From positions 124,001 through 188,000 of the forward strand of contig JALMLS010000311.1 in NCBI GenBank assembly GCA_038496445.1: DNA of 64,000 bases, read 5' to 3'. The DNA comes from Trichosphaerium sp. ATCC 40318. Lineage: Eukaryota > Protista > Tubulinea. The translations under genes and the position numbers were made by a program. Positions 2,949 to 64,000 of the stretch are shown here, in pieces; the first letter of the stretch is position 1, and each line of letters starts with the position of its first letter. The notes under the pieces were generated by a model that saw only the letters and a list, made by a program, of their open reading frames with translations, was not told the DNA's origin and did not search any database.

Positions 2949-3848
2949 ATGGCACTACTGATGAAGGGCAAAGTACAGTTCTCTTTGAGCACTAAACGGA
3001 AGAAATTGGCTCCTTCTTCCTTATTTGACGTAGCAGATGAGCCTGAGGTACAACCTGTAACGAAAAAGCCAAAAATATTACTGGAAGATTCTATTGCGCG
3101 TAGTAAACGTATTGAGGTACCTTTTACCGTTTTTTAAATAATGAAATTCTAAACCAACAAGAAAGAAGCGCTCTTCTACGTAGAACGAGAGGAATGGAAC
3201 ACTGCTCTTGGTAAAATACAAGAAGCGATAGCTTATCATCCCATGTGGGCACGTTTACATGAAGAAAAAGCTCAAAGTGCGTCGACAGCCTTATTTCTGA
3301 CTAGCAATAACGCTTGCATAGTTTTGATGCAATTGGACGAGTTATTTCTTGCAATTCAGTCTGCGCACAAAGCAACATCTATAGATCCTAAATGGTATCC
3401 CGGTTTCCTTACTTTGGTACGTTGTAATACTTCTAACACGTGCAATTATAAAAAGAACTAAATAGGGGAGATGTCAAGCAAATTTCGGTGAACTTGATCT
3501 CGGTCTTGAGTCTCTACTACAAGCGAAAAAATTATCACCAGAGAACGCAGAGATTGACCAAGATATACAATGGTTAAAAGATTTGATAAAAAAGCAACGT
3601 CAACTCGAAGCAGATCCCAACATTAGGATAGAACGGTACGTCAAAATGGCTTAGAATAATTAAGTCTTACTTGCTTTAGTGGAGTTGTTATTGATGTAAC
3701 TGTAAAAGAAGCTACACCATCAATGTCGGATATACTATCACAAACTATTAAAAAAGAAGCAGAGAATGCTGGGACGTGTGTAAAGGATGTTGATATGGAG
3801 GACGCTCCTCCAACATTCAAGAAAGATGCCTTTTTTCAAGGTGATTAA
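2949..3848 (+). CDS. TTC33: Tetratricopeptide repeat protein 33-like
   Basis: Five exons giving ...ARLHEEKAQILMQLDELFLAIQSAHKATSIDPKWYPGFLTLGRCQANFGE...EIDQDIQW, matching the TTC33 TPR pattern. Confidence 0.7.
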
Positions 3849-8772: not shown

Positions 8773-11700
8773 TTAAGGTTTTCGTGCTTCAACAAGGGCA
8801 CTCTTAATCTTAGATACCCTAAAAAGAAATATTTAGATTATAATCAATAAAAAACTTGAACGCACCAGTTGTGATAAGATTCTTCATGGCTCATATTAAA
8901 AACATACTTAGCCACAGGCTTTCTCAGTGTTTTTAACATAAACAAGAAGTTATCAACACCTTCACTCTTTTCATCCAAGGTGTACTTCCTAAAAGAAAAT
9001 ATGTAAGCCACTCAATCCAGCAACACGTGGCAATCCAAAAAGTATTGCAAATTCATTCTTTAAAACGTACAAAGGTTCCATTATTGTAGCTCTTAGTTCA
9101 AGGCGATGTTTTACACTTAATTTCTGTTTCCCTCCTTTAGTGGAACAAACCAGAATACAATCAGAGAAGACGTATACAGTCCTCTCTTTTAAGTGAGCTT
9201 TAGAGCTCGAGGCAACAGCTACAAGTACTTGACCGCTCTAATAGAACAAGTGAGTATAATGAATGACACGAAGAAGACTATTAAAGACTTACAGTGATGA
9301 ATATACGACTATGATTGTCTAAAGGATTGAACCTCTTAAAAAGCGGTTTCAAAGACTTTAGCTTTTTAAGATTGGCATCTCTGTCAACAGTTTTCCATAA
9401 AGGTACAAACTTTTTTGCTTCAATAACAGTTTGTTGTAATGGCTGAGGAGGAACTAAAGACAAAAAATATTAACACTTAAATGTCACGTGACTATTGGGA
9501 GTTAACTTACGTCCTTGTATAGGCATGGCATATTGAACATGTTGCTGTTGAACTTGTTGAACATGAACTGGTTGATGTTGGTGTACAGGAAACGAGTATG
9601 ATTGCGACATGCGTTGAGCTATTGGTTGTCCAACACTGATTTGGTTACTTCGAGATTGAGGAAACGTTTTTGTAGCATCTGCCATTGAGACATATTGTGG
9701 CTGTACATTACCTTTCCCTGCAGCTAAAATGTTAATTAAAATCACTACAAACTTGACGATTCCGTTACGTACGTGGCATTTGTTTGACAGGTTTGTGGAC
9801 AGGTGGGATTTGGTCTGAGTACGTTCTCGAGTGAAAAGATACTCTTGGGTTACCAGCAGCACTTGTTTTATAAGTCATTTGTAGAGGTGCGCATTGACCT
9901 TTAGAGAACAGTTGGTCGTCTAATTGTATAGGTTCCTCTTCTGGTAGAGGAGGTAGTGTATGAGTATCCATACGAGGTGTACTAACTGCAATATCATCTA
10001 ATGACTGACTACTCTCGCTAACAGAATAGCAAGTATTTGGCTTAGCCCTTGGACTTCTAAGTCGAACAAGTTCTGGTCCTGGGAAAGCTATTGCGAGGTT
10101 CAAGTCATTTCTTGGTGTGATTGTAAAGTCTGGTCGAGGCATTCCGTTAAACTTCGACTTAAGACTTGGTTTAGGACTTCTACGATTTTGTTTGGGACTT
10201 CTACGATTTTGCTTAGGACTTCCACGTGTTGAGCTTAGTGGAGAATCGGATATTGATCTTGCTGAGTAGTTTCCTGAGCTTGTTCTAGAGAAAGACAAGT
10301 TTGTTGATGTACTACATGATCTTGAACTATTTGTAGATGTACTCCTTGATACGGAGCTGTCTTCAAAATCAAATACTTCACTAATGCATTTCTCAGCATC
10401 GGTTGACTTGTACTTGCTAAAAAAAGAAGTTAACGTCACAAAAATATTTCAGAGTTAAAAAATATTTTTCTAATCGTTTTGTAAAGCTCACCTTGCTATT
10501 TGAAGGGGAGATAGACCATTTGCACTAACAACATCCAAATTCGCTCCATTTAATATCAAGTATTGGATTACAAGAGAGCGGTTGAAAAGAGTTGCAGCTG
10601 TAATTGGGTATTCACCTTTTGACCCAAATCGATGATTAACACAATCACCTACCTATCGAAGAAATATTAGATTACTCAGCTCCTCAGCACTCATAGTTAT
10701 ACCTCGGCAACACATTGAACTACTCCGAGTAAATCACCTGTTTCTACAGCATCTTTGAGGCCATCATAAACAGCTTCTTTTGTAGCATAACGTTTCCTAA
10801 ATAGGAAGTTAGAAAATAAAAAAAGAGATGTTAACCGGAAGAGCCCGGGCTCCTCTTCAACTTCAAAACAACTTACTTTAGGTATCTTCTGTTCATGTAC
10901 TTATCTTCGATAAACAATCTTTTTGCAGTTCGGGATGCGTCAGTATCGATCTATGTTCACGTGAGCATGACGTGATATTTTTTTTTCAATACCAAAAAGA
11001 TGCTAGCACGTACCATACCCAACCCAATAGCACCCCAAATATCGTTAGATTTTGTGTTACCTATAGCCATAATAACCTGTAAACGATTATTAATTATTTG
11101 ATCAATTTCGAAGGCTGTTGTGGCTAAAAATACAAAGAAGAAGAAAAAAAAATGTACATTTTACACGTACCTCAACAATAGATGGAGGAAATAAATCAAT
11201 TGCAAAAGACTTTACTCTTGAAACACCCAATGTTCTATGAATACTTGCACATTGTACACACAAACATATGCATTTATTCATACTAACCCAAGCAGGATCT
11301 AAATAAAAAACGACCATTAAAACACCATAAAACACAAGGTACTTGCGCTAAAAAAAAACAGTACTGCTTGCAACACTTACCAGCTTGACCGCAATCAGCA
11401 CATTTACAGTTATTACTACGAAGCTTTTTGATTGTAAAACCACTCAACTCTGCATCCTATTTTATTATCCAAGTAAGTAAGTAAAGCCGAAGAGAAATAG
11501 ACGAACGGCGGCCCGTAAGTTTGTAAATTTAGAAAAATTGAAAAAGAAGAAACCAATAGTTATAAAAATACGTACGTTGTTGAACATGATACGTTTGAGT
11601 GCTTTTACCCATTTTCTCTGATCTTTATAGTTTTCTAGGCGGATATGAATGCGCTTAGAAGGCATTACTACCTCAAAGCTATCTAAAACGAAAAGCGTAA

Positions 11701-53354: not shown

Positions 53355-53902
53355 AGCTTTCTTTTGTTTTAATTTACTGCTACAAGTTTTTCGTATTGGA
53401 GTTGTACTTGTTGTTGAACACCAAGTCAACCATATTCTTGTAGCCGAAAGCATTGCTGATAGGCTTGTGCATGGGATAATTACTCCTCGGCGCGTCATTG
53501 TTGCGTACAATGTGTTAATACCCTGTATTAAAAAAAACTACAGAATGCTCCAATGATCTCAGTTTCAAGCGCCAGAACAATATCCTGATCGTTTATAATA
53601 CTATATCCGTGAGCAACAACGTCCTTTTATAGCGTTTAGGTGCTCGTAACAAATGCAATTGATAATAGTATCAATCACAACCTCCAGAAATTTGATTGAT
53701 TTTTGTACTTTAGTAAAAAAGTTGATCGTATTCCAAGCTGTTTTGGTTTGTAAAACCGTATAGCTTTAACTCTATCGCTCATGTTTAAATTATGAAGCTG
53801 ACCAGGTTGGATAATCGGTTTATAGCCTGGTTAGAAGAATGTTACAAATGTGCTACGGAAATCAAACTGTTACGTTCAATGAAAGCAATACCACTATGTT
53901 TA

Positions 53903-54073
53903 ATGCAAATCTTCGTAAAGACTCTAGGAGTCAAGATAATCAGTCTAGAGGTTGAGCAATCCGATAACATCTACAACATCCAACAAAAGATTCAAGACAA
54001 AGAAGGTAATCCGCCTGATCAACAACGCCTTGTCTTCGCTGGTAGACAACTAGGAGATTGCTGGTTTTCATAA
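53903..54073 (+). pseudogene. Truncated, diverged ubiquitin copy
   Basis: [52 protein letters not shown] then CWFS*; C-terminal part and LRGG missing. Confidence 0.75.
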
Positions 54074-54235: not shown

Positions 54236-55640
54236 TTAGTATCTGTCAACTTCATCCTTTTCGTCTTGTTCTTCTTGTGGTACACGTTTTCTTAAAAGAT
54301 TCTCAAGATGTACTCGATACATTTCAAGTGTTTTGATAGGAGAATCCCAAGGTACACGAATCTCTCTCCATACATCTGACGTTTTTTCCAAGCCCATCAC
54401 ATCCATACCTTCATAATGTGTTAATAGTTTATACGATAAAAAAAGCATGCTGATTTCATTTTGGGCGACCTTTAAACCCAAAAATCACGTGATGGCCACT
54501 AAGAATGTTTTTAAAAAAGCATCCACAAATCGCAACTACACGCTGTTTTTGAACAATGTTCTTTGATTCGAGGGTACAGTTGAATAATAGACACTACATG
54601 TCTTACCTTTGCAGTCAAAGCCAGAAAAGTAAGCATCAATAAATTCTACGTCTGCATATTGCTTTACTAATGTTAATAACTCTTTTGCAAATGTGTCGTT
54701 CATGTCTGTAAGAAGTTTTCGGGAAACAGGAGCAATAGGATCTTGAGGAGCAGATTCATACTCATCAGGGAAAACTTGTTTCATTTGACCATTACTAGAA
54801 CGGGACGTAAGTCGACATACGCGTGATTCTTTCTACAAATACATACCTTCTTAATAAGAGAACATCTCTAGCTTCCATTTCCAAGAAAGCAACATCATCC
54901 TTTAGTTCTTTGAGTTTATTTTTACTACCCTCTTGATTTTCTTCAAATTTATCCAACACTTTTTCAATTTCTTTATCATCCTTCAATTCTCTTACTTTAC
55001 CCGTTACTGTTACACGCGTAAGTGGGAGAGTTTCAGGATCTCTTCCTTTAGGAGGTAATTGTGTAACCTACAGCCAAACGTTAGTCGCTAAATCCAAAAA
55101 AAGATGACAATTCAGTGAAACTTGAGTGTCAAACTCGTACAACTAAATTACTCATTTTGACATCTGCCAAATGCTTGTAATGTGGTGAATCTTTCTTTAT
55201 GGAAATAAATGGATGGCATTTGTTCATATCAACCAGTGTGTAGGGCACAAACGAGGAGTACATTGGCCCTTCATTGCCTTGTTCGGCGTCTTTTATGTTT
55301 TGCAGTGTTACTGTGGTATAAACACCTGCCATACGCGCTTGAAGCATTGCTTTGGCCTTGTCAGCTACAGCTAAGTTGTATTTGGCAAATTCTGTTTCAT
55401 TAATAGGTTGGGCTTCGCTATCTTCGTGTTCAATGCCAACTTGAAGGGGTGGTCTGTTAATATAACTAAGAGAGGTCACAGAACTTACTGAAAGAATCGC
55501 TACCGCCTTCATCTACCTCACAGTATTGACGAACGATCCTACGAGCTTGATAGAAGTTAGTATACGCCATGAACGCCTGTATTTGTACCATTTACGCGTT
55601 TTACGTGTGATTTAATTGAAATAGTGCCTTTTGGGCGCAT
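54236..55640 (-). CDS. Split-barrel (pyridoxamine 5'-phosphate oxidase-like/HugZ) + DUF2470 protein, GluTR-binding protein-like
   Basis: MYSSFVPY, SPHYKHL, RVTVTGKV, DEYESAPQDPIA..LLTDMN, FSGFDCKGMDV, EIRVPW; basic N-terminus suggests an organellar presequence; start uncertain. Confidence 0.7.
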
Positions 55641-55839
55641 GACGCTCGATGGTGTCCTTTTAACCGTTAGAGAGTGCTATCCGAAATAATTTGTACAAAG
55701 ATGTGCCACCATGTCGCAAACTCAGTGTGTATAACTTGTTTAGCATCGTCTTGCTTATACTGTTACAAACAACTCTTGAAATGGCAGTCGCGCTTAGTCC
55801 TCGTAAAACAGGCCTACCAGCGTAGCAACTACAGACAGA

Positions 55840-55871
55840 ATGCGATTTACTATCGCTTTTCTTGTATTATT
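55840..55871 (+). pseudogene. Severed 5' end (MRFTIAFLVL) of the ELWxxDGT-repeat gene
   Basis: Joining 55871 to 62583 restores MRFTIAFLVLFVANYAAGDTVVQIPDLN in frame. Confidence 0.88.
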
Positions 55872-55969
55872 TGTGATATCCTCGTACCTTAGGTTGACTT
55901 ATATTATAAATGCACTTAATAAACAGAATATTTCTACAATTACGACTTACGTTTGATCTGGATATTACA
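55872..55969 (+). repeat. 5' LTR (98 bp)
   Basis: tgtgatatcc...ggatattaca; 9/10 terminal inverted repeat; identical to 62480-62577. Confidence 0.97.
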
Positions 55970-55970
55970 G

Positions 55971-55988
55971 TGGACGACACGACCTGGA
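55971..55988 (+). other. Putative primer-binding site
   Basis: TGGACGACACGACCTGGA begins 1 nt after the LTR; TGG complements tRNA CCA; cognate tRNA not identified. Confidence 0.6.
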
Positions 55989-56234
55989 TTTAACTTACGC
56001 TAATATTCTCCGCCGGTTCGACGCATAATATTTTTCCTTCACGTTACACGCTCATATTGGTGGCGGAGAGGGATATATAGCAAACAGGCGATAAAACATT
56101 AAAACACGTGTTGTAAAGCAAAGGATTGCTTAAAAAGGCCAAAATCCTAGTGGGCTGGAGATAAAGCCCTCTATTACAGCTACGTACCTGTCCAAATTAA
56201 CAAACGAATATTCTATTTCTCTTTTAAAAAAAAA

Positions 56235-59200
56235 ATGTCTCAAAACACTGAAGATCGTTTAAAACAACTCGAATCACGCTTTAATTCGTTGGAAGGGTTT
56301 TTACGCGAAAGATTGGCACCAGCAACACCTGCTCGCAGTATACCATTACACCGATCATCCACGCCATACCAGACGCCTACTACGAGAATCTCATTACAAA
56401 CTCCTGGCTCTCCATATATTCCTGTCCCAACTACCCAAACGACAGCAATGCCTAGACCTTACAACGACAGAACTTTGCGAGTTATTACGGATCAATCCCA
56501 ACTCAACACCCAAATCGAAAATTTGGCCATTTCTACCGAAACGCAAGAGCGTATCAAACAAAGTATTCAGGAACAATTAAAGAAGCTGGACATACCACTA
56601 CAGATTAGCGACATTAGCAAACACGTTGAAGAAGTCATTGGCCTCGCTGTTTCTGTAGCTGCTGAAGAGATCGCCGACAAACTAAAAGAAGAAATATATG
56701 ATATTTTAGAAGACAATACCAAAGACGAGACTATATCACTTCCTACAACAACTCCAACATCTGATAAAACTCCTCCACCACCACCAAATAAACCAAGTAC
56801 TGGTGGTACAGCTACAATACCACCATCAACATACAAGCCAGCTAGAATTTCTCTTTCGAAACCTCCTCCGACATTTCAAAATTTTGATCCTGATGCATCA
56901 GCGCAAGGACAGCTCATATCTCTCCTCTCCGTTCTCTTGCCTTTATTCAACGCTCAAAACGTGGTACAAGACATTGTAAAACCTTTTGACGGTACTCCAA
57001 GCCGTGTTAGGTTATTCGGACATCAACTACAACAATACAACGCCAGTACAAATATTTCAGATTCGGCATTATCAAGTTTTATGATTAACAAGTTAAAGGG
57101 CACAGCTGAAAAATGGTATGAGAACAACTATAACGGAGTAGCTGAATTACCACACCCGCAAGCGCTGTTGGATCACATCATTACAGAGTTTGAAGGAAAG
57201 TACGATTACGATGAAGTCATGAGAAATTACCGAGATTTCTCTCAAGGAGAAGATATTTCTTTCAACGATTATTATCAAGAAAAGATGCTATTGGCTAAAC
57301 ACGCTGGAGTCAATCCTCACGGAAAAGGATTTTATGACGAATTATTGGCAAAGATGAAAGACTCTTTACGAACCGCTGTTATCAATCAAGGAGAACCTAC
57401 GGACAACAATGTCACCGAATTATTACAGATAGCAGAAAAAGAAGAATTGAAGGCAAAAAGAATCGAACGATACAAGAAAACTACAAAGAAGGCAACTACA
57501 AAGAATACTTCCACACCTTCAAAGACGACTCCAAGAACCCAGAAATATACAAAGGAAGAATGGGAGAAGCGCTTATTAGATAAAACCCAAAAACCGAATG
57601 AAGGCAGGTGGATTTGGTGTAATCATCACGCGAAATGGGGACGTCACAAAGAAGAAAAATGTATGTTAAACAAAACAACAGTGAGAACCAACGCTTCAAC
57701 ACCAACGCCTCAACCGGTTGTACAACAACCAGGAACACCGATGCCAAGTTATTGGCCTCACTATCAATCAGTACAGTATCAACAACCTCCGTCAAACATG
57801 TCAATGCCAACTGGTCCTTCCCCCGTATCTACAGTACCTTCTCCTAGTGCTCCAGCACAATCTCCTTTGAATACTCAACCTCTACCCTCGACTCAGATGC
57901 ATGTGCTGCCTCCTTATTTCTCGTATCCAATGGCAAGCCAATTTCCAGCGCCAAATGCCAACAGTAACACTGTAAACCAAACTAGTTTAGATAAAACTTT
58001 TTCAGCTTATGTTGTCGTTCGTATTAATGGAAAATCAATCCTTGCTTTAGTAGATAGCGGTGCTTCACACACCCTAATTAGTTTAAAGGCTGCACATGAC
58101 ATAGGACTGAGAACCTACAAACCATACAAGCTAAACTCAATGGCTGCCAACGGTAAGCCCTTACCTCTTATTGGTTATACAAAACAACCATTACAATTTG
58201 AATTTCCAATTTTTAAAACAAAATTCTCGCCATTAATAGCAAAGAACTTATCAGAACCAATGTTATTGGGCCGTGACTTTTTAGCTCAGACTGGAGCCTC
58301 TATAAACATTTCGAAAAAACTATTTTCTTTACCAAATGGTCAACATATCCCTTTAGTGGATGAACTTCCTCCTGAAACACAACTACGCTCTAGTTTATGT
58401 CGTCTTACAAAAGATGTTACAATACCTCCTTTTTCTCCCGCTATTCTAGAAGTAAAAGCAAAACATTTTCGTCATGGTTCACAAGGCATAAATCAAGCCA
58501 CCATACAATTTCTAAAAAAACACAAAGGTTTAAGCGGATCTCATACACTCACTATGCAAGAAGCAGATGGTCGCTTATTATATGAGGTTGTTAACGCTAG
58601 TCCTTCTTACATTACTCTAAATGCTAATGAAATTGTTTCCATTTTTGAACCTGTTACATCAACAAAACATGCTATTAGTGTTGATAGCCGTGAAGATGTC
58701 ATACGTGTAAAAACTAATGCGTCAAATGCTGATTTTGAAAAAACACGTGAACACATCAAGGAAGCTATCAAATTTTTTAAAGACTTTAAACCTTCTTTAC
58801 AAGTTGCAAAACGTATACACAAATTATTTTCAAAACAATTAGAAAAAGCACAAGTTGATGATGAACAAAGAAAAATCCTTTTTAATCTGCTTTGTTTCTT
58901 TGAAACTGAATTCTCAGATGAGATTACTGAGGTGAATGATACTGCCGTCAAATTTGAAATTGATACTGGCAATGCTAAACCACTACATCAACCTCCAAGA
59001 CGTTTTCCTCCTCACTATCACGAATTTATCAAAGATTTTATTAAAAAGTTTACTCGCCATGGTTTAATTCGACCATCTAAGTCGCCTTGGGCGGCACCTA
59101 TTGTAATTGTTAAAAAGAAAGATGGCACTTTACGATTTTGTATAGATTATAGGTCTTTGAACTCAGTGACAAAGCGTGATGTATACCCACTCCCAAGGGT

Positions 59201-62200
59201 AGATGATGCATTAGACGCTCTCATAGGCTCAGTCTATTTCTCAATAATGGATGCTACCAGTGGGTTTCATCAGCTAAAGATAGCAAGAAACTCCATTGAG
59301 AAAACAGCCTTTATCGACAAATCTGGACTCTACGAATGGGTTGTAATGCCCATAATATTGGGTGTATCCAATGCACCTGCAACTTGGCAAAGGTACGTAA
59401 ACCTAGTTCTTTCTGGTTTAAATTGGCAACATTGCCTTGTATATATTGACGACATTATCGTCTTTTCAAAAACTTTTGAGGAACATATTTATAGTTTGAA
59501 ATTAGTTCTTGAACGTGTGCGACAACACAAAATTAAACTAAAACCAAAAAAATGTTCTTTCTTTTTACACGAAGTTGAGTACTTGGGGTTTTTGGTCTCT
59601 GAAGACGGCATAAGACCTCACCCTGATAAAATTGAAGCCATTGTTAAAATGAACGCTCCCTCTGATGTTTCTGGTGTTCGTTCCTTCCTAGGTATGGCCA
59701 CTTACTATTCACGTTTTGTTCGAATGTTATCTGCTGCAGCATCGCCTCTGAGAGCACTATTAAAAAAAGGTGTAGACTTCTTCTGGGGACCTCACCAAGC
59801 TAAAGCTTTTAAAGATATTAAACAAGCGTTAACTTCTGCCCCTTGTTTAGCATATCCTAACTTTGAGAAGCCGTTTGAGTTACACACTGATGCGTGTAAT
59901 ATTGGTATAGGTGCTACTCTAGTACAAAAAGATGATTTCGGTAATGAAAGAGTCATAGCTTATTATTCACGTGCTTTAAATATTCATGAGCAACGCTATC
60001 ATACTCATTTGCTGGAAGCATTAGCAGTAGTAGCTGCTTGTAAGAAATTTCGCGTCTACCTGTTGTACAAACCTTTTAAAATTTACACAGATCACATTGC
60101 ACTGTTAAAATTTAAACGAACATCTCACCCGGATTCAAAAATGATCCGTTGGTCTATTTACCTTTCTGAATTTGACTTTACTATTATTCATCGTAAAGGT
60201 ATTTTAAACTCTGACTCAGATGCTCTGTCAAGACATCCCATACGTCCTGTTGCTGTAAATTATGTCAATATCAATGGCATAGTACACCCTGTGGGTTTTA
60301 TGCACAATTTCACTCCTATTTTACACCCTCGAAATTCTCAATTCTTTCCAGCATATGTGAACACTTGTAAAATCCCAAAGCAACCCCGTTTACGTTTATT
60401 TTATTTACAACGACTTGACAAACAACTGTTGGAATATATTTACTTTATTCAAGCTCCAAAAGCGTTTAAAAACTACAAAAATATTAAAAAAATCATCGCT
60501 GCTACCAAAGGTATGTTTTTAGATGAGAGTGGTATCCTTTGTCGAAAGCGTACTCCACTACCACATGAAGAACAAACAATGAAGACTGTTATTGTAGTAC
60601 CTTCAAGTATGCAAAGCGAGATCATATCTGCCCACCATGATTCAGCCACTGCTGGTCACTTGGGCGTTACAAGAACATATAATAATGTTAAATTAAAATA
60701 CTATTGGGCCGGTTTAAAACGTGATATTGAACAACACATTCGGACTTGTGAAAAATGCCAAACTGGCAAGACCTCTAGGAGATTACCGCCAGGTGCTCCA
60801 ATGCAAACAATTGAAGCAACGTTTCCGTTCCAAACTATTTCTATGGACTTGGTTGGTCCATTAACACGTACAATTAACAACCAAAACCGATGGATTCTAA
60901 CCATCACTGACTATTATACACGCTATGCCATAGCTGTATGCCTACCAGATAAAAAGTCTAAAACTGTGGCTCGTGCCTTATTTGAAAATGTTGTGTGTAT
61001 ATACGGTGCTCCCTCTATTGTTATTAGTGATCAAGGAGGAGAATTTGAAGGCATTGTAGAAGAGCTTTGTGACCTATGCAATGTTGATAAACGTACAACT
61101 GTAGCATATCACCCTCAAGCGAATGGGTTAGTTGAGAGATTTAATCATACTTTAATACAAATGATAAAAATGTTTATTACTGACTATCAAACTGATTGGG
61201 ACCAATATGTTCAATCATGCGTCTTTGCGTATAATACAACACAACACTCTGAATTGAAACAATCACCCTATTATTTAGTTTTTGGTCATCACGCTACTAC
61301 TCCCCTAGACCAAGCAATGGATTGCCTACCAAGACAAGGTGATCATACACTTGACTCATGGACTCGAAAAGTCTCCTTGGCTTTAAAGCGATCACGATCA
61401 TTGGCTGAAGAAGCTCGTTCAAATGCTTATTTACGACAGTCTAAAAGATATAACCAACGAAGAAGAAAAGAAATATATGCGGTTGGCGATTACGTACTCT
61501 TACTACGAAAACGAAAGATAGAATATGGATACACGCATAAATTTGTACACATGTGGGAAGGACCATTCAAAGTCATCAAGGTCCTCAACAAAGGCTTGGA
61601 TTATCAACTGGCTTATTCAAATGGCGATATTGATGAAAAAGTATACAATGTAGATCGACTAAGACGATATCACAAACGAAAGAATGACATTTCAACAGAT
61701 GATAACAATCAAGACAAAGAAATTTTAGAAAATATACAAGATACACCTCCTATTCCTATTCCAGCATCAAGTGAACCTCAAGGAACTTTGGGACGACAAT
61801 ATTTCAGACGTACTAAGAAGGAACTGGGATTCCGAGAATTACAACACATCCTACAATCAACAGCAAGCGCAATGGAAGATTATTATGACAACGACTTACT
61901 TAACAAAAAACGGATTACAGTCTACCATCAACAGCTCATGGGTATTCTAGGAGACAGTGCTGCCGGCTTTATCCCACGTTCATCACGTCAAAAGAAATTT
62001 TTGAAAGAGCTCAAGATTGCTGCGAAAACAGGTAAAGGATTGATTGCGTACGTTCGTAAACTTGCAGATGAATTTGATACGCAATTTGCCGTTGAGCTCG
62101 CGTCAAAACTTATTAACACCGTAACACTTGCTACTGGTGAGTCACGTAAAACGCCCTGCATTGCAGAAGAGCGTAGGACTCCACTAGACGGGTACTGTCA

Positions 62201-62336
62201 CGCTCATAATAAGGGCTACCTAAAGAGGGCAGTGGTTCCAGTAGATAGGACGCGACAGTCGCTACTGCAAAACAGACGTTTAAATGAGCAACCTTGGCCA
62301 ATCGTACTGGATTACGGTTCGTCCTTGACTAAGTAA
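56235..62336 (+). CDS. Single-frame Gag-Pol polyprotein (2033 aa)
   Basis: Gag KLKGTAEKWY and CHHC knuckle; protease ALVDSGASH; RT SPWAAP..LRFCIDYR..VYIDDI; RNase H LHTDAC..IYTDH; integrase HHCC, MDLVGP, SDQGGEF, NGLVERFN, WEGPF; no introns. Confidence 0.97.
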   Translation: MSQNTEDRLKQLESRFNSLEGFLRERLAPATPARSIPLHRSSTPYQTPTTRISLQTPGSPYIPVPTTQTTAMPRPYNDRTLRVITDQSQLNTQIENLAISTETQERIKQSIQEQLKKLDIPLQISDISKHVEEVIGLAVSVAAEEIADKLKEEIYDILEDNTKDETISLPTTTPTSDKTPPPPPNKPSTGGTATIPPSTYKPARISLSKPPPTFQNFDPDASAQGQLISLLSVLLPLFNAQNVVQDIVKPFDGTPSRVRLFGHQLQQYNASTNISDSALSSFMINKLKGTAEKWYENNYNGVAELPHPQALLDHIITEFEGKYDYDEVMRNYRDFSQGEDISFNDYYQEKMLLAKHAGVNPHGKGFYDELLAKMKDSLRTAVINQGEPTDNNVTELLQIAEKEELKAKRIERYKKTTKKATTKNTSTPSKTTPRTQKYTKEEWEKRLLDKTQKPNEGRWIWCNHHAKWGRHKEEKCMLNKTTVRTNASTPTPQPVVQQPGTPMPSYWPHYQSVQYQQPPSNMSMPTGPSPVSTVPSPSAPAQSPLNTQPLPSTQMHVLPPYFSYPMASQFPAPNANSNTVNQTSLDKTFSAYVVVRINGKSILALVDSGASHTLISLKAAHDIGLRTYKPYKLNSMAANGKPLPLIGYTKQPLQFEFPIFKTKFSPLIAKNLSEPMLLGRDFLAQTGASINISKKLFSLPNGQHIPLVDELPPETQLRSSLCRLTKDVTIPPFSPAILEVKAKHFRHGSQGINQATIQFLKKHKGLSGSHTLTMQEADGRLLYEVVNASPSYITLNANEIVSIFEPVTSTKHAISVDSREDVIRVKTNASNADFEKTREHIKEAIKFFKDFKPSLQVAKRIHKLFSKQLEKAQVDDEQRKILFNLLCFFETEFSDEITEVNDTAVKFEIDTGNAKPLHQPPRRFPPHYHEFIKDFIKKFTRHGLIRPSKSPWAAPIVIVKKKDGTLRFCIDYRSLNSVTKRDVYPLPRVDDALDALIGSVYFSIMDATSGFHQLKIARNSIEKTAFIDKSGLYEWVVMPIILGVSNAPATWQRYVNLVLSGLNWQHCLVYIDDIIVFSKTFEEHIYSLKLVLERVRQHKIKLKPKKCSFFLHEVEYLGFLVSEDGIRPHPDKIEAIVKMNAPSDVSGVRSFLGMATYYSRFVRMLSAAASPLRALLKKGVDFFWGPHQAKAFKDIKQALTSAPCLAYPNFEKPFELHTDACNIGIGATLVQKDDFGNERVIAYYSRALNIHEQRYHTHLLEALAVVAACKKFRVYLLYKPFKIYTDHIALLKFKRTSHPDSKMIRWSIYLSEFDFTIIHRKGILNSDSDALSRHPIRPVAVNYVNINGIVHPVGFMHNFTPILHPRNSQFFPAYVNTCKIPKQPRLRLFYLQRLDKQLLEYIYFIQAPKAFKNYKNIKKIIAATKGMFLDESGILCRKRTPLPHEEQTMKTVIVVPSSMQSEIISAHHDSATAGHLGVTRTYNNVKLKYYWAGLKRDIEQHIRTCEKCQTGKTSRRLPPGAPMQTIEATFPFQTISMDLVGPLTRTINNQNRWILTITDYYTRYAIAVCLPDKKSKTVARALFENVVCIYGAPSIVISDQGGEFEGIVEELCDLCNVDKRTTVAYHPQANGLVERFNHTLIQMIKMFITDYQTDWDQYVQSCVFAYNTTQHSELKQSPYYLVFGHHATTPLDQAMDCLPRQGDHTLDSWTRKVSLALKRSRSLAEEARSNAYLRQSKRYNQRRRKEIYAVGDYVLLLRKRKIEYGYTHKFVHMWEGPFKVIKVLNKGLDYQLAYSNGDIDEKVYNVDRLRRYHKRKNDISTDDNNQDKEILENIQDTPPIPIPASSEPQGTLGRQYFRRTKKELGFRELQHILQSTASAMEDYYDNDLLNKKRITVYHQQLMGILGDSAAGFIPRSSRQKKFLKELKIAAKTGKGLIAYVRKLADEFDTQFAVELASKLINTVTLATGESRKTPCIAEERRTPLDGYCHAHNKGYLKRAVVPVDRTRQSLLQNRRLNEQPWPIVLDYGSSLTK

Positions 62337-62469
62337 GCCTCATACGTTCCCAAGCAAAAACCTAAAGTTTACGAGTATTATTTTTATTTCCTGCCTTACG
62401 ACTTATGTGAATCTCCACTACCATTTCAATGCTTATTTGACTTTTCACATTGACGGATGCGTTTGATTC

Positions 62470-62479
62470 AGTGAGGGAG
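62470..62479 (+). other. Polypurine tract
   Basis: agtgagggag immediately before the 3' LTR. Confidence 0.75.
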
Positions 62480-62577
62480 TGTGATATCCTCGTACCTTAG
62501 GTTGACTTATATTATAAATGCACTTAATAAACAGAATATTTCTACAATTACGACTTACGTTTGATCTGGATATTACA
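62480..62577 (+). repeat. 3' LTR (98 bp)
   Basis: Exact copy of the 5' LTR, followed by TSD ttatt. Confidence 0.97.
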
Positions 62578-62582
62578 TTATT

Positions 62583-64000
62583 CGTTGCCAATTACGCAGC
62601 AGGCGATACTGTAGTACAAATACCCGATTTAAACATTGGAGCTACGGACAGTTTCCCAGATGTAGTACATTTCGCTCACCTAGATGGACAGCTATATTTT
62701 GCAGCAACAACTGCAGGTCCGCTTTTTATGACAGAACTTATACCTAAACTAACTCCTAGCGAACGGTATTGAGTTATTCACGCTCGATGCATCATCCACT
62801 AGTAATAATATACAACTTGCGGTACGTATAATTCGTTACGACATGATTCTCAAAAAATTTTAGTCAGACATATACGCAGGTGCCTCTGATTCATACCCAA
62901 TGCATTTAGTTGCGTATGACGTACGAGATAGTAAGTCCATAAAATAAATTGACATTCTTTTTTAGGACAAGCTTTACTTTTCTGCAGAAACAGCTTCTGG
63001 GCGCAGTTTGCATGTATATGATCCTGTCACTACAATGACTACAAAACTACAATTTAATGGCAGCGATATCGTTGACCCACAGTACCCTGTGATTCACTTT
63101 GATGTCCTCTACTTTACTTCAGAAGGCAGATTAATGTCACTAAGTGATAGTAACTTCAAAATTGAGGAGTTTAGCAACTCTAATGGCGAAGGAGAGGAAT
63201 TAAGCAAGTTGGTCGCTGTAGGTTTTGAATTATATATATTCAGAGGAAGACATCTGTTTGCTTTCAACTCATTCATTGCCTCTGGTATACTAGAATGACA
63301 ATATTGTTTTTTTCTATATTAATGCGGTATGTAGGTCCTGTGGCAGTCTTTAGACTTACCCTGGACGGAAACTTAACATCAGAGATGGTTAAGTTCAATA
63401 ATCAATTGTATTTCACCTATGCATCAGCCCTCTTCGGTAATGAAATATTCAGTTACAATCACACAGAGAATCAGATAAGCAATGGTACTCCTTTTGTATG
63501 CCTTTTTTTTTAACCTGTTGTTTCTAACTTTATTCCAGTACTTATCCGCGGAAGTGGAGATTCCTACATTGAATTTATGACACCTTATGATAATCTTTTA
63601 TGTTATGCCGCTGATTTTGTTCCTGCTTCCTTTGGACGGGAGCTTGCGTGCTATGACCCTGCTATGGTAAGTGGAAAAAAACATCATCTATTTTATTCTC
63701 TTTTTTAATGATTCAAAAAGCCAGCTCAAGACTATCAAGCTACAGAAATCAATCAATTAAGGTCTAGTTTTCCAAGATTCGTTACAGAATTCTTCGGCCT
63801 GCTATACTTTCAAGCTCAGAATGATGGTGAAAATAAAGAATTGTATAGCAATAATGGCACAATTGCATCTAGTACTGTCGAAGAGCTTAACTCTGGTGGC
63901 TCTTCTTTCCCAGCAAACTTCTTCAGTACGTTAAGAAACTTAGGAATTGCACGGAACCTGCTAATAACTGGCTTGTTGTAGAGTGGGAAGCTAACCGCCA
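62583..64000 (+). CDS. Body of secreted ELWxxDGT-repeat-like beta-propeller protein (interrupted allele; runs off the window)
   Basis: Repeats LDGQLYFAATTAANGIELFTLD, YDDKLYFSAE, FNNQLYFTYASALFGNEIFSYN, FGRELACYD, LLYFQAQNDGENKELYSNNGT, ELNSGGSSFPANF; short GT-AG introns. Confidence 0.75.

Follow-up and report, generated by a model that had tools for sequence, protein, structure and literature searches.

What happened to a gene whose reading frame runs into a retrotransposon after ten intact codons, and how long ago did it happen? The question is raised by a 64,000-nt stretch of DNA from the protist Trichosphaerium sp. ATCC 40318 (the window; positions 124001-188000 of contig JALMLS010000311.1, here C123), which we analyzed within an assembly of 70.3 Mb in 642 contigs. 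Positions 55872-62577 of the window are a 6706-bp long terminal repeat (LTR) retrotransposon of the Ty3/gypsy type, which lies in the first exon of a protein-coding gene and in the same orientation as that gene. A first-pass annotation of the window had proposed that a very recent insertion splits the signal peptide of a secreted protein. We consider it very likely that an autonomous Ty3/gypsy element hit codon 11 of a single-copy gene encoding ELWxxDGT-type repeats, with one haplotype filled and the other intact.

The filled and the empty haplotype

We searched the assembly with the left flank (55400-55871) and the right flank (62578-63300) of the element and found that each matched three places: C123, the end of contig C4, and contig C491. 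On C491 the left flank ended at 11406 and the right flank began at 11402, an overlap of exactly the 5-bp target-site duplication (TSD), and the sequence across the insertion site read ATGCGATTTACTATCGCTTTTCTTGTATTATTCGTTGCC... without the element. Removal of the element from the window (55871 joined to 62583) gives ATG CGA TTT ACT ATC GCT TTT CTT GTA TTA TTC GTT GCC..., which the first-pass annotation had put forward as a restored signal-peptide open reading frame (ORF). This uninterrupted ATG CGA TTT... sequence is present naturally in C491, from position 3376 of the segment L001 (C491:8000-16000), with a single TTATT. Of the 20.6 kb of C491 we compared the first 20 kb, which were collinear with C123:168580-190498 and C4:923541-914975 at 97-98.6% identity with small indels only. 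Since the flanks are collinear at this level of identity, C491 is the alternative haplotype without the element, a haplotig that carries the empty allele of the locus. Just two versions of the locus, filled and empty, occur in the 70-Mb assembly, and divergence between the two haplotypes is 1.4-2.9% across the 20-kb flank. This makes the insertion hemizygous or segregating within the sequenced culture, and the heterozygosity that had been suggested for it agrees with the presence of the empty allele in the same assembly. The empty haplotype also has a 133-bp stretch (C491:9464-9596) that C123 lacks at 178058.

The third match lies at the end of C4, which stops at 931448, within a region that C123 covers as well. 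C4:919600-931448 and C123:178636-190498 dovetail over ~11.8 kb, and the overlap includes the element. The C4 version carries all the single-nucleotide polymorphisms of the filled haplotype together with a 1-bp indel upstream of the ATG of the gene, and a private 6-bp insertion in the reverse transcriptase is common to the C4 and C123 copies. The end of C4 is rich in errors, with 33 substitutions and 48 indel columns in the element and with the mismatches clustered; such extra differences look typical of an unpolished contig end. C4 and C123 thus carry one insertion that was assembled twice, and the assembly has two states of a single locus. The overlap of ~11.8 kb around the heterozygous insertion is consequently counted twice in the assembly. 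A heterozygous insertion would account for the break in the assembly at this locus, that is, for the dovetail of C123 and C4 and for the haplotig C491.

The element and its family

The element is bounded by 98-bp direct repeats at 55872-55969 (5' LTR) and 62480-62577 (3' LTR), both on the plus strand, as are all features of the element and of the interrupted gene given below. The two LTRs are identical at 98 of 98 positions and have TG...CA termini (TGTGATATCC...GGATATTACA) with an imperfect terminal inverted repeat. Directly outside them the pentamer TTATT stands at 55867-55871 and again, at the right junction, at 62578-62582, while the empty allele has it once; the identical LTRs and perfect TSD of the first-pass annotation were therefore as described. 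The 5' LTR holds a TATA-like run (55900-55911) and an AATAAA (55917-55922). One open frame fills the space between the LTRs, a single gag-pol ORF of 2033 aa (56235-62336). In it Pfam placed an aspartic protease at aa 593-690 (58011-58304; PF13975, PF00077), a reverse transcriptase (RT) at aa 959-1119 (59109-59591; PF00078, E=2e-28), an RNase H domain at aa 1184-1313 (59784-60173; PF17919, PF17917), and the H2C2 zinc domain and catalytic core of an integrase at aa 1455-1627 (60597-61115; PF17921, PF00665). This domain order (PR-RT-RNaseH-IN, for protease, reverse transcriptase, RNase H and integrase) assigns the element to Ty3/gypsy, since the integrase follows the RT, unlike in Ty1/copia. The LTR pair, the TSD and the PR-RT-RNaseH-IN order together are far beyond chance.

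The polypurine tract AGTGAGGGAG (62470-62479) was read directly from the sequence and abuts the 3' LTR. A 14-mer beginning with TGG, TGGACGACACGACC (55971-55984), starts 1 nt past the 5' LTR and is a putative primer-binding site by its position and its TGG start. Self-priming was also considered; the sole complementarity between LTR and leader is an AT-rich 8-mer, 32 nt from the LTR, which could be chance, and we did not find it convincing. The 590 aa that precede the protease gave no Pfam match to gag or zf-CCHC and are presumed to be gag from their position. No match to a chromodomain (PF00385), which would mark the chromovirus branch, was found by Pfam in gag-pol. At the other end, ~390 aa of the polyprotein past the integrase core (61116-62333) had no Pfam match. 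We found no tRNA genes near the insertions of the family and no sign of targeting to RNA polymerase III genes.

A search of the genome with the LTR identified four full-length pairs from three distinct insertions (C123/C4, C437 and C317), together with a few further matches at 83-90% identity. A lone LTR on C65 (177962-178051) is 99% identical, lacks its first 8 nt at the 5' end and has no obvious target duplication. Relative to the window copy, the C437 copy differs by two substitutions, one homopolymer base and a 6-bp indel and has a longest frame of 2031 aa. Two different substitutions mark the C317 copy, which shares the 6-bp indel and has five single-base frame-breaking indels that could be real or assembly errors. 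Every substitution is private to one copy, giving a star-like pattern. The TSDs of the three independent insertions are 5 bp each (TTATT in the window, CTCAT and GATGG for the C437 and C317 copies), and each insertion has an empty counterpart in which its pentamer stands once, on C491 for the window copy, on C474 and C110 for C437 and on C216 for C317.

Dating rests on identity between these copies. The copies differ by ~0.03% (2 substitutions per 6.7 kb) as compared to 1.4-2.9% between haplotypes, and transposition was therefore far younger than the divergence of the haplotypes. The family is currently active, or was so very recently, since it has inserted independently three times and an empty counterpart exists for every insertion. 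The copy counts thus bear out the earlier proposal of an active family, and the two substitutions that separate the window copy from each sister copy, along with its identical LTRs, fit the extreme youth claimed for the insertion.

Several further observations were made on the copies. The 6-bp insertion shared by the window and C4 copies (59353-59358) is in frame and falls in the conserved RT motif 'MP.G..NAP', where the window copy has P-I-I-L-G and the copies on C437 and C317 have P-M-G. The flank of the C437 copy (L003, C437:8000-17999) has an extra insertion of ~244 bp at about 2406-2650 of that segment, which is absent from C474 and C110. For the C437 locus we found at least three versions (C437, C474 and C110) and 81%-identical copies on C23; it may be either a repeat or a locus with more than two haplotypes. 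Elsewhere the genome has at least 90 further matches to gypsy RT.

The interrupted gene

The insertion point follows the second base of codon 11. The 5' part of exon 1 (55840-55871) runs from the ATG through codon 10 to the second nucleotide of codon 11 (MRFTIAFLVL F-) and is identical to L001:3376-3407. The signal peptide is completed by the 3' part of the exon (62583-62716; ..VANYAAG|D), which also holds the first repeat. Joined, the two parts give an N-terminus that looks like a signal peptide, MRFTIAFLVLFVANYAAG|D, with M-R as a basic n-region, the 11-residue core FTIAFLVLFVA, and NYAAG|D with small residues at -3 and -1; hydropathy is highest at residues 4-12, with a value of 3.0. The element thus lies within the hydrophobic core, and the split signal peptide of the first-pass annotation stands. 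The start codon was placed by comparing the alleles. A 1-bp indel (GGCC vs GGC) at 55813-55814, 27 nt upstream of ATG 55840, separates the empty allele from the filled one and was seen in both assemblies of the latter (C123 and C4). Because this indel shifts the frame of the upstream ATGs, so that only one of the alleles has them in frame, the stretch upstream of ATG 55840 is not coding. A divergent ORF begins at 55512, which leaves ~330 bp for the promoter and 5' untranslated region.

We built the exon model on the empty allele and carried it over to the window. Exon 1 extends 166 nt from the ATG to a GT-AG intron of 43 nt (62717-62759), in which ACTAAC is the branch site. Exons 2 (62760-62821), 3 (62966-63284, with ELWxxDGT-type repeats), 4 (63335-63484), 5 (63539-63666) and 6 (63721-63925) were supported by the comparison of the alleles, and exon 6 by a profile match as well. 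Exon 7 (63982-64000) continues beyond the window, where a Pro/Thr-rich stalk follows, and C123 has further exons of the gene up to about 189500. The GT-AG introns are 43, 144, 50, 51, 54 and 56 nt long, and one frame is kept through exons 1-7. The introns have CTAAC/TTAAT-like branch motifs near the AG, and their donor sites vary (GTCCGC, GTACGT, GTATAC, GTACTC, GTAAGT and GTAGAT). In the filled allele exons 1-7 contain no stops and no indels relative to the empty allele. The earlier statement that the downstream exons remain open was correct to this extent, while the run-on of exon 1 to '...TPSERY*' did not hold and is removed by the 43-nt intron. Between the alleles 13 of 1321 exon nucleotides differ (1.0%; nine synonymous and four conservative non-synonymous changes), as do 9 of 398 intron nucleotides (2.3%). 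These differences show purifying selection on a gene in which decay has not begun. Searches of the genome with exons 1, 3 and 6 found no paralogues, and the gene is single-copy.

The exons were searched one at a time. On TIGR04534, the ELWxxDGT model, single exons scored 26.5, 16.7 and 13.8 bits against a whole-protein cut-off of 65 bits, and exon 6 gave the best single match (E=5e-6). A HMMER search with exon 3 found 61 proteins at E<=1e-3 (best E=5e-16); five of the six top relatives scanned gave 235-432 bits on TIGR04534, and the top match was a related GloVer-repeat protein. Relatives of this type are typically secreted proteins, and some of those found with exon 3 have T9SS sorting tails. 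A Pfam search of the exons gave no match, and a search of the ESM Atlas with exon 3 was uninformative. The open segments downstream encode the Pro/Thr-rich stalk, then a hydrophobic segment and, after it, basic residues (CRKKQEP). The stalk and this C-terminal membrane anchor probably belong to the gene, and their arrangement suggests that the product is a type I membrane protein.

Two neighboring genes were noted upstream. The divergent ORF belongs to a multi-exon gene on the minus strand (54236-55512), which starts ~330 bp from the ATG of the interrupted gene, and a ubiquitin-like ORF (MQIFVKTL...) lies on the plus strand at 53792-54073.

Consequences, alternatives and known systems

From these observations we propose the following course of events. 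An autonomous element of an active family would have integrated into codon 11 of the gene, where a 5-bp staggered cut by the integrase would have led to the duplication of TTATT. The insertion would have taken place on one haplotype, while the intact exon was kept on the other, represented by the haplotig C491. Read from the native ATG, the filled allele has 37 codons and then a stop in the 5' LTR. Transcripts of the gene would probably end in the element as well, as the 5' LTR carries the AATAAA. The 3' LTR contains an ATG (62518) in frame with exon 1 that opens a chimeric 84-aa ORF (62518-62772). The N-terminus of this ORF is charged, poorly hydrophobic and unlike a signal peptide, and a read-out from the 3' LTR would be without a working signal peptide. 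The most likely outcome is that the filled allele is null, with the intact allele making up for it.

The filled and empty versions could instead be variants of different cells in a non-clonal or evolving culture, for example after an insertion during cultivation. The assembly itself holds nothing that separates culture variants from heterozygosity, and the finding that all three full-length copies have empty counterparts is also compatible with recent bursts in culture. However, filled and empty flanks are 1.4-2.9% apart over 20 kb, which places the insertion on a long-diverged haplotype, as for two homologues. An insertion in a subclone would be expected to leave an empty version with identical flanks, and the flank searches found no such third version; we regard this possibility as unlikely. 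Another reading of the empty site is that C491 is a paralogous segmental duplication, which would leave the gene in the window without an intact partner at its own locus. Flank identity of 97-98.6% rather than 100% would allow this, and the two empty counterparts of the C437 locus indicate that some such regions are multi-copy. Against it, C491 is collinear with the C123/C4 path over the first 20 kb of its 20.6 kb, only two versions of the locus were found in 70 Mb, and the same level of divergence was seen at the other filled/empty pairs, so that a paralogue seems very improbable.

A third alternative leaves the two haplotypes as they are and concerns the fate of the filled allele, which would stay functional if splicing from a GT at 55884 in the 5' LTR to an AG at 62534 in the 3' LTR removed the element as a 6.65-kb intron. 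The resulting join (55883^62535) preserves the reading frame, introduces no stop and would leave a 60-nt (20-codon) scar in the signal peptide, with the hydrophobic core (MRFTIAFLVLFVISSIFLQL...) and the whole mature protein kept. Within one LTR the same two sites bound 43 nt, a typical intron size for this gene. We enumerated all GT...AG pairs and compared them with those in 3000 shuffled LTRs. A frame-restoring, stop-free pair occurred at least once in 70% of the shuffled LTRs and at least twice in 61%, and since 70% give one or more, the observed pair is at chance level. The intron would be 6651 nt as compared to 43-144 nt in the gene, i.e. ~50 times longer. The sites lie in the element's own 3' U3, where their use would delete the TATA-like region, and efficient use may thus have been selected against. 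We therefore give rescue by splicing very little credence. If true, the locus would show a retrotransposon midway in its conversion to an intron, in an allele that still functions.

Hemizygous insertion by an active family remains the reading we prefer, and some points weigh against it. Expression of the gene and the loss of its function were deduced from DNA, and the zygosity of the insertion (1:1, or a minority of the cells in culture) was judged from the assembly. The N-terminus appears to have the features of a Sec-type signal peptide as assessed by inspection and hydropathy. Past exon 7 we found no unambiguous GT-AG path, and the gene model ends there. Identical LTRs of 98 bp are by themselves a weak clock, bounding LTR divergence to less than ~3%. 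Genome searches for the primer tRNA with the complement of an 11-mer of the primer-binding site and with a T-arm-anchored pattern gave no tRNA gene, with match counts at or below control.

The insertion of an active element into an exon on one homologue is ordinary, a well-known and common kind of event, and it leaves the current understanding of how such elements work unchanged. What the locus offers is a clean natural case, with both alleles in hand, of LTR retrotransposons moving now in a little-studied protist lineage. The insertion could serve as a PCR and read-depth marker for ploidy, clonality and drift of the culture, and an element with LTRs of only 98 bp as a compact system for studying the least promoter and polyadenylation sequence that an LTR needs. 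A look through the literature for records of the shortest LTRs and for retrotransposons of marine amoebae found nothing usable.

The element resembles other Ty3/gypsy elements (Metaviridae) in its TG...CA LTRs, 5-bp TSD, PR-RT-RNaseH-IN order, H2C2 integrase and polypurine tract. LTRs usually measure a few hundred bp to several kb, whereas those of this element are at the low end for autonomous elements. It is further set apart by the fusion of gag and pol in one frame, in which Pfam shows no gag, CCHC or chromodomain, and by the ~390 aa past the integrase. Its nearest relative in the same genome is 61% identical in the RT, and in a public protein set the RT-IN region matched gypsy polyproteins at 36-50% identity and none closer. 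The element represents a new Ty3/gypsy family. The interrupted gene shares with ELWxxDGT proteins (TIGR04534) the repeat LYF...G.EL...DG(T). Those proteins are mostly bacterial, secreted and beta-propeller-like, whereas this gene is eukaryotic, with spliceosomal introns and probably with the Pro/Thr-rich stalk and C-terminal membrane anchor. As an allele, the locus is like the gene-disrupting polymorphic insertions of Drosophila, maize, yeast and other organisms in having a young element in a coding exon of one haplotype while the other retains an intact empty site, and in that the sister copies are near-identical and also polymorphic. To our knowledge such insertional events are little documented in the group to which this amoeba belongs, and the locus differs from those well-known alleles in that both of its states are preserved in one assembly.

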